From sequence record ON529853.1: a stretch of DNA of 64,000 nt, one strand, 5' to 3'. A model generated the notes under the pieces. The model searched no databases and was not told the origin of the DNA. It worked only from the letters and a program-made list of their open reading frames with translations. The position numbers and the translations under genes are program-made. This document shows positions 25,516 to 31,438 of this stretch, one piece after another (the stretch's first letter is position 1; each line of letters begins with the position of its first letter).

Positions 25516-25549
25516 AAAAGGCCCGTCGCTGTCGAGCGCCGGGCCTTTG
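25516..25549. terminator. Bidirectional terminator closing the RNA island
   Basis: AAAAGGCCCG...CGGGCCTTTG. Confidence 0.7.
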
Positions 25550-25556
25550 ATCGTGA

Positions 25557-25643
25557 TGGAGGTGCGACCTGGACTCGAACCAGGATGAGGGTTTCCCCTA
25601 CGGCTTATGAGGCCGCTGCCTATTCCAGCCGCGCCACCGCACC
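25557..25643 (-). tRNA. tRNA with CAT anticodon and long variable arm (Met or Ile2 unresolved)
   Basis: Acceptor GGTGCGG/TCGCACC + TCCA; anticodon arm GCGGC-CTCATAA-GCCGT; variable arm AGGG-GAAA-CCCT; T arm CCTGG-TTCGAGT-CCAGG. The D stem is weak. Confidence 0.7.
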
Positions 25644-25873: not shown

Positions 25874-25951
25874 TGGGAGCGGGGACACGATTCGAACGTG
25901 CGATCTCTTGGTTATGAGCCAAGAATGTTGACCGGGCTACACTACCCCGCG
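25874..25951 (-). tRNA. tRNA-Met(CAT), initiator-like
   Basis: CGCGGGG 5' end with 1:72 mismatch, CTTGG-CTCATAA-CCAAG, GCACG-TTCGAAT-CGTGT, encoded CCA. Confidence 0.85.
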
Positions 25952-25962
25952 ACTCTTAGGCG

Positions 25963-26263
25963 CCAGTTCCGACGGCAGTGCGCCGGCTGGTACTCAACGG
26001 ACTCCTCCGCCGACCCTGCGCCAGGAACCATGGCAGACACAGGATCAAGACGAAGGCGTTGCTTTACACCCACCTTGGACGTCGGACCCGTCGGGCCGAC
26101 GAAACTTTGACCAGGGGTTGTGGGACGAGTAATCCCGCCCTCTGGCCCGGCGGACTACTAGGCCTGCCCTTGCCTGGGCTCCCCCAGACGTCCGGCACGA
26201 CTTTTGGTCAACCAACCTTTACTCACGGAGACGGACGTAGCACCCGGCGTGGATCGGAACTGG
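25963..26263 (-). ncRNA. Unassigned structured RNA of about 300 nt
   Basis: Ends pair (CCAGTTCCGA/TCGGAACTGG, then CGCCGG/CCGGCG). No credible ORF. It lies between the tmRNA and tRNA-Met. Strand inferred from neighbours. Confidence 0.5.
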
Positions 26264-26339
26264 TAGGCCCCTCTCCTGAACGGGCCGCCGTGCTCTGGCG
26301 GTGGTCCGTCGTCATCGCCGCCGGCGTCCGCCTGCGAGA

Positions 26340-26685
26340 GTAAAGTGGGGAACTTTCTGTTCCAAGGCCCGGCAAGCCGGGGTTCCCCATACCCGTGGTC
26401 GCCCTTAGGCGGCCAGGAGGACTCGTTCGCCAGCGGCGAAGTTGTCGTTGTGTGCTTCGACAGTTGTCAAAGTTGGATCGTGAGCAGCCCGAAGACCACC
26501 ATGCAGACCCTAGCACTCGCCATTCAATCCCGTCACCAACGTCAATCGATACTGTTCGGCCCCTCAAACCGCGCCCGTCTCCCATTATAGGAGGGGGATT
26601 GGTGGAGCCGACGGGATTCGCACCCGTGTCTTGTCCGTCTGTTTCGTTCTCTCTGCTTCGGTCCGAAGACCTCCGCGCGACGAAA
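26340..26685 (-). ncRNA. ssrA: Two-piece (circularly permuted) tmRNA
   Basis: The acceptor piece ends ...CCCGTCGGCTCCACCA at 26600. After an intervening segment the coding piece starts GGGGCCGA at 26563, giving G3:U70. Tag frame 26455-26405 reads AHNDNFAAGERVLLAA*. Outer boundaries are approximate. Confidence 0.9.
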
Positions 26686-26689
26686 TGCC

Positions 26690-26729
26690 TGTATACAGAG
26701 TCCGTTTCTGAGTGTCAAGCATTACGTCA
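26690..26729 (-). promoter_or_regulatory. Sigma70-like tmRNA promoter
   Basis: TTGACA-17 nt-TATACA. Confidence 0.8.
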
Positions 26730-26738
26730 AAGATTTTT

Positions 26739-26825
26739 TGGAGGGACGGGTGAGAATCGAACTCACGCCAGGCTTTCGCCAGGAGGATTTGCAGTCCCCC
26801 GCCTTACCACTCAGTCCACCGTCCC
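26739..26825 (-). tRNA. tRNA-Cys(GCA) with long variable arm
   Basis: GGGACGG/CCGTCCC + TCCA (U73); GGGGA-CTGCAAA-TCCTC; GGC-GAAA-GCC variable arm; GTGAG-TTCGATT-CTCAC. Confidence 0.85.
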
Positions 26826-26831
26826 CTGGTG

Positions 26832-26973
26832 TCGTTCTGGAGAGGGGAGCCCGCCCGTATCCGCCGCAGGTCCCGTGGTCGGTCCCGGCGGCGTCAGGGT
26901 TTCACGGCCCCAGGTCGACCCTCTCCCGTGATAGAGGGCGATACGCTGCGGACGGGCTCGCCTCTCCAGACGA
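26832..26973. ncRNA. Unassigned rod-shaped RNA of about 140 nt
   Basis: TCTGGAGAGGGGAGCCCG pairs with CGGGCTCGCCTCTCCAGA, with internal hairpins. Confidence 0.45.
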
Positions 26974-27943: not shown

Positions 27944-27948
27944 ACGCA

Positions 27949-27983
27949 AGAGCCCCGACCGATGTCTCGGCCGGGGCTTTTTC
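27949..27983. terminator. Bidirectional terminator
   Basis: AAGAGCCCCGACCGA...TCGGCCGGGGCTTTTT. Confidence 0.75.
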
Positions 27984-28247
27984 TCGCCGTCGTCTGTGTC
28001 TCGGCCGGCGCAGCGTCAGGAGGGTGTGTCGCGAGACCTCCGTCACGGCTCCAGGGCGCTGGGTCCCCTGAAGCAATCCTCACCTGAACCGGGCTTTCCT
28101 CCCCAAGGGGCTGAAGGTGGCGGCGTCCTGGCGACCCTGCGGGGCTCACACGGCAAGGTCGCTTCTCAATGCCAGGCATAGAAGTCGACAGGAGAAAGGG
28201 TTTTCCTATTCTCCGTCATTGGCGTGGTCCGATGTCGATGTAGCACA

Positions 28248-28798
28248 GCCTCTGGCTGCCGTCACGCCTGGTTCCCATTTCTAGGACGGCGTTCTCCTCA
28301 GAAGACGGGTCCGGGTAGACCTCGTGTGGCTCTTCAGCGCCTGACGGAACTCGACGACGTGGTTGCCGGCCGTCTGAACTGGCGTCCCCAAGCGCTCCCA
28401 GGGGCATGCCGTAGGAGTGTGGCAGGGTCCGCCCCACGCTGTGTCAGGATATACGACAATGAAGAGGGGGAAGTCAATACCGCCTCTGGCGGCCGTCACG
28501 CCTGGTCGTTCGTCTCGGGCGGCGTTCCCGTCAGGCCTGATTGTCCCCGGCCGAGGTTTGTTCGGGGGAGCGGTGCGGTCAATCACCCCGACTCACGTTC
28601 TCTCGTAACCCGGCAGTACGGGCTTAAGCGCGCACGAGCGCTGCAAGGCAGTCACGCGGTGGTCCGCCTGTGGTGGGGCTTCAAATCCAGACGCGCAATC
28701 CCCGCCTGTATGTCAGGATTGTCGTCAACGGTCAAGGTGAAAGGGCGCTCTCTCCCGGTCACGCCTTGTCCTGATGTCTCAGCCGGCGTTCGCTTCAG
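28248..28798. repeat. Three dispersed copies of GTCACGCC-N19/20-GGCGTTC-N3-TCAG
   Basis: Copies at 28261, 28495 and 28758. The first two also share 24 of 25 nt over 28248-28272 and 28482-28506. Confidence 0.7.
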
Positions 28799-28973
28799 AC
28801 AGTACGGCATTCTCGGGGCCGTCCCACTCACCCGCTGTCGTCGGGCCTGTTCCCAGAGGAAGGTCTACCCCAGGACAGATTGCTCCAGAGGCCAGGTCAG
28901 GGCGAACCCTGTGTGCTGCGCCATAAGGACCTTCAGCAAGCGGTTAGCCTATCAGGATCGGGGCCAGAGGGCA

Positions 28974-29008
28974 AAGAAAAACGGCCCTGATCCGAAGATC
29001 AGGGCCGC
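28974..29008 (-). terminator. Terminator after the Ro60/TROVE gene
   Basis: Minus strand GCGGCCCTGATC-TTCG-GATCAGGGCCGT-TTTTCTTT. Confidence 0.85.
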
Positions 29009-29064
29009 CTCAAACTTACGTTGTAGCGTAATTCCGCACGCGGATTACGAATACCCGTGCCGGA

Positions 29065-30450
29065 TCAGCCGACGACGTTTCCGTCCGAGAAATCCATCGC
29101 TTCGACTTCCCGGATATAGCGCAGGACGCTCTCCGAGAAGCCGTCGATGTGGACCCACCCGTTGCCGTACCCGACACCATTCTGGTGGCTGGCGACGTTG
29201 ATCATATAGGCCTTGCCGGCCTTAGGCGCCGGCAGTCGTCCTCCGCCCATGGTGCTGCTCAGGGCGCCGTTCGCCTGTTCGTCAGTGATGACGATCAGGC
29301 GGTCGCAGGCGAACTGGCGGTTCACCACGTCCACGGCCTGGGCCAGGGCGGTGCCGTTGTGCGGCTGCGAACGGATCACCGCATCGACCCCCGCCATGCC
29401 CTTGCGGGCCGGCACTTCCACGAGGCCGTTGGAGAAGGTCACGACGCGCACGTCGCCCGGCAGGATCGACGCCAGCGTCGCCGCCGCGTCCATCCGGGTC
29501 AGGTCCGACTTTCCGGACAGCTTGTTCCGCATGGAATAGGAGACGTCGACCATGACCACGGTCGATCCCGTGAAGGGTTCGGCCTGGTTGATCGAGGCCA
29601 CCAGGGCGTCGTCCAGCGCCCGCTCGAACGAGGGCGCATAGCGCGCCGCCGCCGTGAAGCGGAAGGGCAGGACGCGATCCGCGCCCTTGCGCGCCCGGAT
29701 CGCGGCGTTGACCAGATCGCGATCGACGCCGGCCTGCTCCATGTTGCGCAGGTTGCGCAGCAGGGCGAGGTAGCCCAGCTTGCCGTCGGTCAGCAGACGC
29801 GTGAACGTCGCCTTCTTGTCCGCGCCGCCCGACAGGGCGACTTCCCAGGTGTCGGGCGCCGCCAGTTCGTTGTCGACCAGCTTCTTGTAGAGGGTCTCGC
29901 GGTCATCGTTCGCCGGCTTGGCGTGCGCCAGGAACAGGACGTCGCGCAGACGCACCGACTTGGCCCGATCGTATTTGGCGATCTGGTAGGCGTCGAAGTT
30001 GCCGAAGGCCATCGACAGGCCCTTCTTCACCTGGGCCGACAACGGCGCCTTCTTGCCGTTCGAGCGCAGCGGGTTCAGCGCCCAGTAGAGGGCCAGGAAC
30101 TCGCTCAGTTCGTCAGCGCGCTGAATGACGCGCGCGATGGTGAGCGACACCAGGGCCGAACCTGAGCCGCGCTGGGCCAGCACGACGAGCAGCAGAAGGG
30201 GAACGTGACGCAGCTTGGCGTCCTCGCGGGCCTCGACGGCGATCTGGGCGAGGGTCTCGACCGGAACCTCCTTGGCGAGGCTCTGGATACGGTCGGCGAT
30301 CGACACGCCGCTCTCGTAGAAATTGTCTTCCCAGAGCAGGCAGGACATGACCGACCGGCGCAGGGCCTGCGTCTTGGTCATCCGATCGGCCGGCGCGCCT
30401 TCATGAGTTCGCGCGGTGGTCGCTTTGGGCTTTGCGTTGATCGACGCCAT
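29065..30450 (-). CDS. rsr: Ro60/Rsr TROVE-domain RNA-binding protein with C-terminal vWA domain
   Basis: THEGAPA, LRRSVMSCLLWEDNFYESG, KY, TWEVALS, LGYLALLRNLRNM, VLPFRF and MIDAS-like VDVSYSM...ITDEQ. SD AGGAGG upstream. Confidence 0.9.
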   Translation of the reverse strand: MASINAKPKATTARTHEGAPADRMTKTQALRRSVMSCLLWEDNFYESGVSIADRIQSLAKEVPVETLAQIAVEAREDAKLRHVPLLLLVVLAQRGSGSALVSLTIARVIQRADELSEFLALYWALNPLRSNGKKAPLSAQVKKGLSMAFGNFDAYQIAKYDRAKSVRLRDVLFLAHAKPANDDRETLYKKLVDNELAAPDTWEVALSGGADKKATFTRLLTDGKLGYLALLRNLRNMEQAGVDRDLVNAAIRARKGADRVLPFRFTAAARYAPSFERALDDALVASINQAEPFTGSTVVMVDVSYSMRNKLSGKSDLTRMDAAATLASILPGDVRVVTFSNGLVEVPARKGMAGVDAVIRSQPHNGTALAQAVDVVNRQFACDRLIVITDEQANGALSSTMGGGRLPAPKAGKAYMINVASHQNGVGYGNGWVHIDGFSESVLRYIREVEAMDFSDGNVVG

Positions 30451-30483
30451 GATGGGTCCCCTCCTAAGTGTCTGTCGGCAGGA

Positions 30484-30656
30484 TGACCTTGAGGTTGGGG
30501 AGGAAAAGTCGAAAACCCTTTCATACCGGTGCGTCTACCGTTTCCGCCACCCGCGCATTGTGGCGCGCGAGCCAGGACTTGAACCTGGAAGCCCTTGACG
30601 GGCGCCGGTTCCAGACGAAGTATGGGCTCTCTGCGCCATCCCCGACCTCGCGGTCA
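30484..30656 (-). ncRNA. Y-RNA-like element with permuted class II (Leu-like) tRNA domain
   Basis: Terminal stem GAGGTCGGGGA/TCCCCAACCTC; variable arm GCCC-GTCAA-GGGC; T arm CCAGG-TTCAAGT-CCTGG; CTCGCGC-GCCA-caat-GCGCGGG; D region GGTGGCGGAAACGGTAGACGC. Confidence 0.75.
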
Positions 30657-30661
30657 GTGAA

Positions 30662-30812
30662 CTCTCCGGCGCTCTGGTAGGAAGGCGGGGGAACATACGC
30701 AGCCGGATAGCGGGATCGAACCGCGAGACCGGGGGTTTGAATCCCGGCTTATCAACCAGCGATGTAACCGACCGCTTTCACCACCCGCCCACCAACCAGG
30801 GCGCCGGAAAAG
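30662..30812 (-). ncRNA. Y-RNA-like element with T-loop
   Basis: Roughly 25-bp imperfect terminal stem, GTGGTGAAAG motif, T arm GCGG-TTCGATC-CCGC. Confidence 0.65.
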
Positions 30813-30817
30813 CAGAA

Positions 30818-30970
30818 ACATGAAGGCGGTGGGGGAATAAGCGACCCCACTCTTTTTTAGGCGTGCTACCGTTACACCAAACGCCGCTAGGCGACGTTGC
30901 GGAATCGAACCGCTCATCCCGCTCCACATGCGATGAAAGTGACGTCTGTCGCCACCCACCGCCTTCATGC
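30818..30970 (-). ncRNA. YrlA-like Y RNA (permuted tRNA domain)
   Basis: 16-bp terminal stem GCATGAAGGCGGTGGG/CCCACCGCCTTCATGT; GTGGCGACAG motif; T arm; loop-closed acceptor stem AACGTCGC-CTA-GCGGCGTT; D arm GTGT-AACGGTA-GCAC. Confidence 0.75.
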
Positions 30971-30979
30971 TGTTGGTCC

Positions 30980-31155
30980 AGAAGCGTATGGTGGATCGAC
31001 AGGGGAACCGGCGGAAAGGCGCCGTTTGGACTATCGTTCTAACCAACTGAACTACCGCCGCGCCCGAGGGTGCGCCGGGTGGGACTCGAACCCACGACCT
31101 ACAGTGTGCGAAGAATGCCTCTCCTTCACCACCTGTCGACCCGCCATACGCTTCT
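30980..31155 (-). ncRNA. YrlA-like Y RNA (permuted tRNA domain)
   Basis: 24-bp terminal stem; GTGGTGAAGG motif; T arm GTGGG-TTCGAGT-CCCAC; loop-closed acceptor stem; D arm GTTC-AGTTGGTTA-GAAC. Confidence 0.8.
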
Positions 31156-31161
31156 CGACCC

Positions 31162-31307
31162 TGTCCGCGACAGTCCCGAGGACTGACCCCGCAGAGAACC
31201 GGAGTTCTCTTGCGGGGTCAAGTCGTCCGGGAATAGGCGGAACCGAGAGCGGGGCCAAGGCCCCAACGTACCAAAAACGAAGAACTCGGTCCCTGTCGCC
31301 ACGGACA
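31162..31307 (-). ncRNA. Y-RNA-like element without tRNA domain
   Basis: TGTCCG-tgg-CGACAG pairs with CTGTCG-CGGACA. It carries the GTGGCGACAG motif and three internal hairpins, just behind a TTGACA promoter. Confidence 0.55.
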
Positions 31308-31372
31308 ATGACTGTGTGCCCGATCCCGTTCATTGTGTCAACAACGACGACAGAAAAAGTTGGGATTTGCGG

Positions 31373-31407
31373 CAAAAAGAAACCCCCGGATCGCTCCGGG
31401 GGTTTCC
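31373..31407 (-). terminator. Terminator after the repressor-like gene
   Basis: Minus strand GGAAACCCCCGGAG-CGA-TCCGGGGGTTTCTTTTT. Confidence 0.8.
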
Positions 31408-31438
31408 ACGACGTCTGACGTCGGCGGGGGTTCCAGGG

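Follow-up and report, generated by a model that had tools for sequence, protein, structure and literature searches.

Does the jumbo phage Bambus encode its own transfer-messenger RNA (tmRNA) at a place where its published genome shows no gene at all? Brevundimonas phage vB_BpoS-Bambus is a lytic 348-kb jumbo siphophage of the subfamily Dolichocephalovirinae, with Brevundimonas pondensis LVF1 as its host. The window analysed here is a stretch of 64,000 nucleotides of its sequence record ON529853.1; subtracting 186,000 from a record coordinate gives the window coordinate, and all coordinates below are those of the window. The annotation of ON529853.1 holds no feature between tRNA-Cys (26739-26825) and tRNA-Met (25874-25951), and in the paper on the phage ARAGORN was used for tRNAs and tmRNAs with the outcome that 'none could be detected' (PMC10070969). 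We conclude that the minus-strand interval 26686-26345, lying between these two genes, is most probably a functional, circularly permuted two-piece ssrA gene, whose processing, charging, and tagging activity are predicted from its sequence.

Ribosomes that stall are reached by tmRNA with the help of SmpB, and alanyl-tRNA synthetase (AlaRS) reads the G3:U70 pair of the tRNA-like domain. The two-piece tmRNA gene of Caulobacter crescentus was reportedly described by Keiler, Shapiro and Williams (2000). Among phages, an ARAGORN survey of 18,146 genomes by Buchholz et al. in 2022 gave tmRNA genes in 402, with 133 unique tmRNA structures of which 53 are two-piece (PMC9004378). Those listed as 'Permuted' in Table S1 of that survey include phiCbK, CcrKarma, CcrMagneto, CcrSC, CcrBL9, and other Caulobacter phages, and no Brevundimonas phage (PMC9004378). 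Additionally, a genome announcement of 2026 counts a tmRNA in the Caulobacter phage Shash.

Covariance-Model Match and Gene Layout

The Rfam model RF04321 (tmRNA_permuted) matches positions 26662-26405 with 57.9 bits (gathering threshold 47; E 1.2e-8 over all 64 kb of the window), and the match spans the full model (positions 1-213). Six sister Brevundimonas phages all carry the match at 57-60 bits each (6/6), and the syntenic site of phiCbK, CcrBL10, CcrRogue, CcrColossus, Bajun, and BL57 scores 71-88 bits. An original prediction, made from the letters of the window, had proposed a permuted tmRNA of the alphaproteobacterial type with its own tag. That reading is supported by the RF04321 score together with synteny, helix covariation, and the pattern of conservation.

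The gene, delimited by Rfam and comparison, begins with an acceptor piece of about 87 nt (26600..26686, minus strand like all parts of the gene), placed by the Rfam alignment with a 5' end inferred from the promoter. It comprises a 5' hairpin GGUC-UUCG-GACC (26671-26660), the 3' strand of helix P2a, ACGGACAA (26638-26631), a GAC linker, the T-arm ACGGG-UGCGAAU-CCCGU (26627-26611), the acceptor 3' strand CGGCUCC (26610-26604), and ACCA (26603-26600), so that the piece ends at 26600. An intervening segment of 36 nt (26564..26599) follows; it separates the CCA end from G1 of the coding piece and would be cut out of the precursor. The coding piece of about 219 nt (26345..26563) opens with the acceptor 5' strand GGGGCCG (26563-26557), and also contains a D-loop analogue with AUCGA, the P2a 5' strand UUGACGU (26545-26539), a candidate PK1 pseudoknot, the tag frame, and a 3' domain (26404-26345) with an AACAGAA...CCCC motif common to cellular alpha tmRNAs. 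Because this motif closes the RF01849 model in cellular genes, the 3' end of the coding piece is placed near 26345, in agreement with the lower coordinate of the original prediction.

Direct reading gives 7/7 pairs between GGGGCCG and CGGCUCC, G3:U70 among them. All 7 acceptor and 5 T-arm pairs are canonical, the discriminator is A, CCA is encoded, the T-loop has 7 nt, and in P2a UUG-A-CGU pairs with ACG-GA-CAA. The acceptor piece thus lies upstream of the 5' strand, with its T arm, the CGGCTCC-ACCA end, and the G3:U70 pair all where they had been predicted.

Tag Frame and Probable Dependence on Host SmpB

For comparison with cellular genes, a structured pattern (CCA end, GGGG, NDNFA tag) yields 75 genome loci, which include a Brevundimonas metagenome-assembled genome (MAG), several Phenylobacterium, and a Caulobacterales MAG. 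Cellular Caulobacterales are represented below by the Brevundimonas MAG (locus L009), a stand-in for the host, and by Phenylobacterium haematophilum (L061); their tags are ANDNFAGDVALAA and ANDNFAEEVRLAA, respectively.

The tag frame of Bambus (26405..26461) reads GUC GAA GCA CAC AAC GAC AAC UUC GCC GCU GGC GAA CGA GUC CUC CUG GCC GCC UAA, i.e. 18 codons and a stop (UAA, 26407-26405), and translates as [V E] A H N D N F A A G E R V L L A A stop. Read from GCA (26455-26453), the frame 26455-26405 gives AHNDNFAAGERVLLAA*, and the tag ends in ...NDNFAAGERVLLAA-UAA. Among the sister phages GCA changes synonymously to GCU and CAC (H) to UCC (S), and the rest is invariant. Cellular and other viral relatives show ...AA(A/C)U|GCN AAC GAC at the point of resumption. 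In the phage subfamily the reading is ...AA(A/C)U|GUC, with no further codon in Colossus, 2 in the phiCbK group, and 3 in the Bambus group before AAC GAC AAC. The context of Bambus, AACU|G, is that of the cellular genes. All length differences of the tag across the subfamily are in frame, and every version ends with a hydrophobic residue, A-A, and a stop.

The candidate PK1 (26475..26516), found by a script search, consists of S1 GUGC/GCAU and S2 GGGUC/GAUCC, with a loop 3 hairpin GGUGGUC-UUCG-GGCUGCU. It is the single H-type candidate and lies 13 nt before GUC. Position and spacing (12-13 nt before GUC) are alike in Bambus, CcrColossus, and phiCbK, with different sequences, and a PK1 pseudoknot in Bambus is suggested by this likeness. 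The family comparison, the constant PK1 spacing, and the Val at which ARAGORN starts the tags of phiCbK and Bajun together favour GUC (26461-26459) as the resume codon, two codons upstream of GCA; the encoded tag is then probably VEAHNDNFAAGERVLLAA rather than AHNDNF..., with GAA or GCA as possible resume codons as well. Of the tag first proposed, the frame with NDNF and a terminal AA before the stop is retained, and its start is more likely the GUC.

The Bambus tag keeps NDNF and the C-terminal L-A-A, motifs common to both host-clade tags and the recognition regions of SspB-alpha and ClpX in Caulobacter. The earlier suggestion that a diverged tag alters SspB or protease routing finds no support in a tag that has kept both motifs; an effect of the additional residues at the N-terminus on adaptor binding is conceivable.

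When E. coli SmpB is compared by tblastn with 50,697 phage records, 68 of them match, at identities down to about 42%, and none of these is a Brevundimonas or Caulobacter phage. Since the phages of these two hosts give no smpB match, Bambus would have to rely on the SmpB presumed for its host. Such reliance had been proposed from the lack of smpB in the window, and the tblastn negative extends this to the whole genome.

Competition for host SmpB is also the basis of the strongest alternative. The RNA could be a decoy or modulator, its tRNA-like domain binding host SmpB, and perhaps AlaRS, so that trans-translation in the host is damped or redirected. Of all parts, the tRNA-like domain has the best conservation and score, no SmpB is supplied by the phage, and the tmRNA of mycobacteriophage DS6A, which consists of a tRNA-like domain only, causes decoy-like inhibition when expressed in E. 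coli (PMC4131195, PMC11915505). However, a pure decoy would need neither the tag features nor the 3' domain. Across the subfamily the tag frame is kept, along with its resume context, length differences that stay in frame, a synonymous change, and the LAA end, and the 3' domain that follows is fully conserved. Bambus also differs from a DS6A-type mimic without a tag frame in having the 18-codon frame and its stop. We therefore regard the decoy as unlikely and favour a functional tmRNA.

Conservation Among Sister Phages and Helix Covariation

In the six sister Brevundimonas phages the region is 92-99.6% identical, and individual segments were scored on the alignment of Bambus with Kikimora. Identity is 93% in the acceptor piece (93-97% among the sister phages) and likewise 93% in the coding piece as far as the tag, 95% in the tag itself, and 100% in the 3' domain. 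The intervening segment, in contrast, is 42% identical and contains a 90-column indel (36 nt in Bambus, 125 nt in Kikimora and Gurke) between flanks of >=93% identity. This pattern, as expected of a processed two-piece RNA, points to purifying selection on the mature parts only.

Helices are maintained by paired changes. In the 5' hairpin of the acceptor piece a compensatory swap of U-A to A-U occurs among the sister phages (GGUC...GACC to GGAC...GUCC). The tRNA-like domains extracted from all loci comprise 39 distinct versions of one common architecture, in which G3:U is invariant and covariation is seen in the acceptor and T-arm pairs. Helix P2a played no part in the filtering; 94% of its cells are canonical, against an average of 72% and at most 82% over 2000 shuffles, and 15-45% when the register is shifted. 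Compared with the host-clade genes, Bambus has doubly compensated changes both in P2a (CGG/CCG to UUG/CAA) and in the first T-arm pair (C-G to A-U).

The permuted tmRNAs of phiCbK, CcrBL10, CcrRogue, CcrColossus, Bajun, and BL57, identified by BLAST with the BL57 gene and then Rfam, lie in the same tRNA-Cys/tmRNA/tRNA-Met/tRNA-Met/helicase neighbourhood. At least 13 phages belonging to several genera have the gene at this conserved position; the two tRNA(CAU) genes and the helicase always lie downstream, and tRNA-Cys lies just upstream in both CcrColossus and Bambus. A region of CcrPW picked by synteny with RNR genes contains no tmRNA.

This evidence bears on a second alternative, by which the locus is a non-functional remnant: a pseudogene in decay, or part of the host ssrA picked up where a prophage attaches. 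Integration into ssrA is frequent among temperate phages, and such phages often carry parts of the gene (PMC9004378); the Rfam score exceeds its threshold by only about 11 bits, and ARAGORN makes no call. Yet the gene has its two pieces, its tag, and its 3' domain, the divergence from host-clade genes consists of compensated substitutions, and the spacer is free to change whereas the mature parts are fixed. No integrase is annotated in the surrounding 21 kb (26 features), and a position shared across several genera argues in the same direction. The Bambus gene is thus complete, diverged from the host clade, and without an annotated integrase nearby, unlike an attachment-site fragment, and a remnant appears very improbable. 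The chance that the region is protein coding and its likeness to tmRNA incidental is negligible: open reading frames (ORFs) of 81-178 aa do overlap it (26345-26590 plus, 26395-26931 plus, 26223-26585 minus), as is common by chance at 65% G+C, but this reading is refuted by frame-breaking indels of 89 nt and 2 nt between sister phages inside the ORFs, one ORF crosses tRNA-Cys, no coding sequence is annotated at the locus in 7/7 records, and neither the covariance-model match nor the helix covariation has a protein explanation.

Putative Promoter, Possible Transcription Unit, and 3' Stem-Loop

Upstream of the functional tmRNA gene favoured here, a promoter-like sequence is read directly, with a -35-like hexamer TTGACA (26713..26718, minus strand) and, after 17 nt, a -10-like hexamer TATACA (26690..26695, minus strand). 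The former is perfect, with TTGAC invariant in 7 phages, and the latter matches 4/6 of TATAAT, has no final T, and is invariant in 7 phages. Both hexamers are conserved, although identity between Bambus and Kikimora drops to only 53% across the 17-nt spacer; TTGACA/TATACA is a putative promoter. Of the consensus promoter in the original prediction, the perfect -35 holds, but TATACA falls short of consensus and the site is absent from the list of a sigma-70 scan.

The first gene downstream is tRNA-Met(CAU) (25874..25951, minus strand), which starts with CGCGGGG and is probably an initiator; its homologue in CcrBL10 is annotated as tRNA-fMet. It is followed by a second tRNA(CAU) (25557..25643, minus strand; ARAGORN and Rfam) and a terminator-like site (25537-25521, minus strand). 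As the latter is the sole minus-strand site of its kind in the cluster, the tmRNA may be co-transcribed with the initiator-type tRNA in a unit ending at 25537. The upstream neighbour is tRNA-Cys(GCA) (26739..26825, minus strand; ARAGORN and Rfam), syntenic in CcrColossus. By Rfam alignments, tRNA-Cys(GCA) and the second tRNA(CAU) each span 87 nt and have 12-13 nt inserted in the variable region, which is unusual for such tRNAs, and these long forms (85-89 nt) are conserved across the subfamily. The second tRNA(CAU) may be a tRNA-Ile2 instead of a tRNA-Met.

Adjoining the tmRNA on its 3' side, a long two-tier stem-loop (26348-26212, minus strand) shows two doubly compensated pairs among the sister phages by RNAalifold and carries the motif YUYCGCAGGYGG. 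Conserved sequence continues past it to about 26085. The same architecture with a different sequence occurs in CcrColossus, phiCbK, CcrBL10, and CcrRogue, and the stem-loop has no match in Rfam. It is possibly a precursor or processing element. A plus-strand ORF at 25978-26343 was rejected as a gene, the indels there not being multiples of three.

Proposed Mechanism

Transcription would start at the conserved TTGACA/TATACA and may run through tRNA-fMet and tRNA-Met to 25537. Host tRNA-processing enzymes would then cut at 26600 (CCA end) and 26563 (G1) and discard the 36-nt segment, after which the acceptor piece of about 87 nt and the coding piece of about 219 nt would be held together by the acceptor stem and P2a as a tRNA-like domain. 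Host AlaRS would charge this domain with alanine via G3:U70 and A73. With host SmpB, the tmRNA would enter stalled ribosomes, and translation would resume, likeliest at GUC, adding A-VEAHNDNFAAGERVLLAA. Given the match of NDNF and LAA to the host-clade tags, tagged products would go to host SspB/ClpXP. The net effect would be added ribosome-rescue capacity in infection.

Evidence Weighing Against the Assignment

Several observations weigh against a functional tmRNA at this locus. ARAGORN, when run on the window, gives three tRNAs and no tmRNA. The alpha_tmRNA model RF01849 reaches 49.8 bits against a gathering threshold of 50, in a partial match (model positions 73-180 of 355) that covers the tRNA-like domain only. 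The genes of cellular Caulobacterales reach 199-246 bits with RF01849 and about 125 with RF04321, so that the Bambus gene is the most diverged of the members compared. When folded singly, the pieces are no better than shuffles (z 0.09 and 2.4). The sigma-70 scan lists no promoter here, with a -10 that is not consensus. The resume codon may be GUC, GAA or GCA, and a Val resume codon is unusual. For PK1 the chance baseline is high, with 35% of shuffles giving any candidate and 9% one at the same position.

Both ARAGORN and the alpha_tmRNA model had been proposed as checks together with the original prediction. ARAGORN fails to call not only the Bambus gene but also undoubted relatives, namely the permuted tmRNAs of CcrBL10 (L106), CcrRogue (L107), CcrColossus (L108), and Phenylobacterium haematophilum (L061), and for the Brevundimonas MAG (L009) it gives an implausible 764-nt gene with a wrong tag. 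RF04321 recovers all five. Among the subfamily members tested, ARAGORN calls only phiCbK, BL57, and Bajun. Its result on Bambus is a false negative, and since it misses relatives that RF04321 finds, ARAGORN-based counts of phage tmRNAs are underestimates. With RF01849, the tRNA-like domain is matched at a score just below threshold; among other phages, Kikimora scores 40 bits, and over the full length Bajun scores 57.4 bits and CcrColossus 53.5 bits. The Bambus gene is kin to the alpha type but lies outside the curated RF01849 boundary. Since the pieces pair with each other, folding them singly is uninformative and lends no support, and the sigma-70 scan missed the site because the -10 hexamer has no final T.

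Comparison with Related tmRNAs

The nearest known counterparts of the Bambus gene are those of the phiCbK-type Caulobacter phages (Dolichocephalovirinae). They share with it the position upstream of tRNA-fMet/tRNA-Met and the helicase, the two-piece layout, the AA(A/C)U|GUC context, the position and spacing of the PK1 candidate, the 3' two-tier stem, and a tag with NDN and an end of hydrophobic residue plus A-A. They differ in the acceptor stem (GGGGCCG in Bambus, GGGGGCG in phiCbK), the tag (VEA(H/S)NDNFAAGERVLLAA as compared with VAANDNDVVAFASAREAIAA), and the spacer, which is 36 nt in Bambus and 81-104 nt in the phiCbK-type phages. The Bambus gene also scores lower on RF04321 (58 bits versus 71-88) and is not seen by ARAGORN.

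Phage Bajun (vB_BgoS-Bajun, ON529858.1), which shares host genus, laboratory, and subfamily with Bambus, has an annotated tmRNA (BAJUN_03120). It is likewise permuted and lies upstream of two tRNA-Met and the helicase, but the two genes are only weakly alignable by BLAST. Bajun has a host-like P2a CGG/CCG and a tag of the phiCbK group identical to that of CcrRogue (VAANDNAPFAVREAIAA), and its 118-nt spacer is homologous to the spacer of Kikimora and Gurke, not to that of Bambus. The homologous spacers of Kikimora/Gurke (125 nt; L005 1640-1775, L006 1636-1771) and Bajun (118 nt; L109 1295-1425) have conserved blocks and a compensated hairpin (GGGAA/UUCCC versus GGGGA/UCCCC), with mature parts that come from different lineages. 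The insert matches no Rfam family at E<0.5 and is absent from the 36-nt Bambus spacer.

Cellular Caulobacterales genes agree with Bambus in the acceptor stem GGGGCCG/CGGCUCC, G3:U70, the unusual UGCGA T-loop, the GAC linker, AUCGA, NDNF in the tag, the context ending AACU|G, and the 3' motif AACAGAA...CCCC. Their P2a and T-arm pairs differ from those of Bambus by compensated changes, and their tags resume at GCG directly before NDNF, whereas Bambus has three extra codons. Moreover, the stretch from the stop codon to the 3' pseudoknot holds fewer elements in Bambus, which also carries an additional 3' stem-loop.

The marine methylophage Melnitz and its myophage relatives also combine a lytic phage with a permuted alpha-type tmRNA and no reported phage smpB (PMC9004378). 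They belong to an unrelated phage family and host, and Melnitz has a glutamine riboswitch in the 3' domain (PMC9004378), where Bambus has no riboswitch recognisable by Rfam and only the uncharacterised 3' stem-loop. The tmRNAs of mycobacteriophages (Bxz1 group) and the DS6A RNA are, like that of Bambus, phage-borne ssrA homologues using host SmpB (PMC4131195). These forms are non-permuted and one-piece or have no tag frame, unlike the permuted Bambus gene with its tag frame.

Some matches were set aside. The 21 IMG/VR contigs matching the tRNA-like-domain pattern, several of them beta-type, were not used as evidence on phage lineages; L089, L094, and other IMG/VR loci score 91-98 bits on RF01850 and have long atypical tags, for example ANKKALGFADLTVGMPALRLAA and AKASTLGTVKVSMGRGFRFARGTEAVAA. 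Such beta-type loci may be host genes at provirus ends. The genome match L075 (Akkermansiaceae) is a protein-coding false positive, and BLAST with the L083 gene matches mostly the adjacent tRNA-Trp.

Neighbouring RNA Elements

Near the RNA cluster, Pfam identifies an RNA ligase (PF09414), an SNF2-type helicase, and a TROVE+VWA (Ro60-like) protein. The TROVE+VWA gene (29065-30450, minus strand) is annotated only as 'RNA-binding protein', and unannotated gaps of about 1 kb flank it at 27944-29064 and 30451-31438. About 560 nt upstream of it on the same strand, a full-length match to the Y-RNA-like family YrlA occurs at 31011-31123 (minus strand), with a sub-threshold 32.6 bits (gathering 69, E 1.9e-4). 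Gene and match may form a phage Ro/Y-RNA module. Weaker YrlA-like matches lie near the tRNA-Met genes of phiCbK and CcrColossus. A GOLLD RNA (RF02032) adjoins the tmRNA of BL57 (169.7 bits, gathering 150; L104 1607-2093, minus strand) and encloses a tRNA-Gly. In Bajun GOLLD is sub-threshold at 104 bits (L109 295-713, minus strand), in phiCbK it is partial at the locus edge (L105 35-96, minus strand), and it is unannotated in all three records. Rfam gives no GOLLD match in the Bambus window.

A wider reading, which we hold to be doubtful, makes the tmRNA one arm of a phage RNA-maintenance island that sustains translation when the host cuts or withdraws RNAs. Its members may be the tmRNA, the co-transcribed tRNA-fMet and tRNA-Met, the Rnl-type RNA ligase, the Ro60-like TROVE protein, and its candidate Y-RNA-like partner. 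The host tmRNA of Caulobacter is degraded by RNase R at a time set by the cell cycle. This decay, as well as ribotoxin and anticodon-nuclease defences, may be what the island answers, and the Val resume codon with 0-3 extra residues, the 3' two-tier stem, and the structured spacer inserts of some members may be features that resist host control.

Significance

Two-piece tmRNAs of phages, and their presence in this subfamily, are already known, and no new class of system is described here. The new findings are that the seven Bambus-like phages, explicitly described before as lacking a tmRNA, do carry one, and the particulars of its diverged form. The practical value lies in correcting the annotation of seven Bambus-like Brevundimonas jumbo phages published without a tmRNA. 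Nearly all GenBank entries of the subfamily leave the gene unannotated, the Bajun record being one that annotates it, and most phiCbK-like records have no tmRNA feature, since many permuted genes escape ARAGORN. Such genes are recovered by the newer Rfam model tmRNA_permuted. Dolichocephalovirinae phages with laboratory hosts offer a convenient place to test the function of phage tmRNA. Throughout the subfamily, a two-piece tmRNA beside an initiator tRNA is a conserved trait of ancestral origin, and this makes a stronger case that these phages need extra ribosome-rescue capacity.

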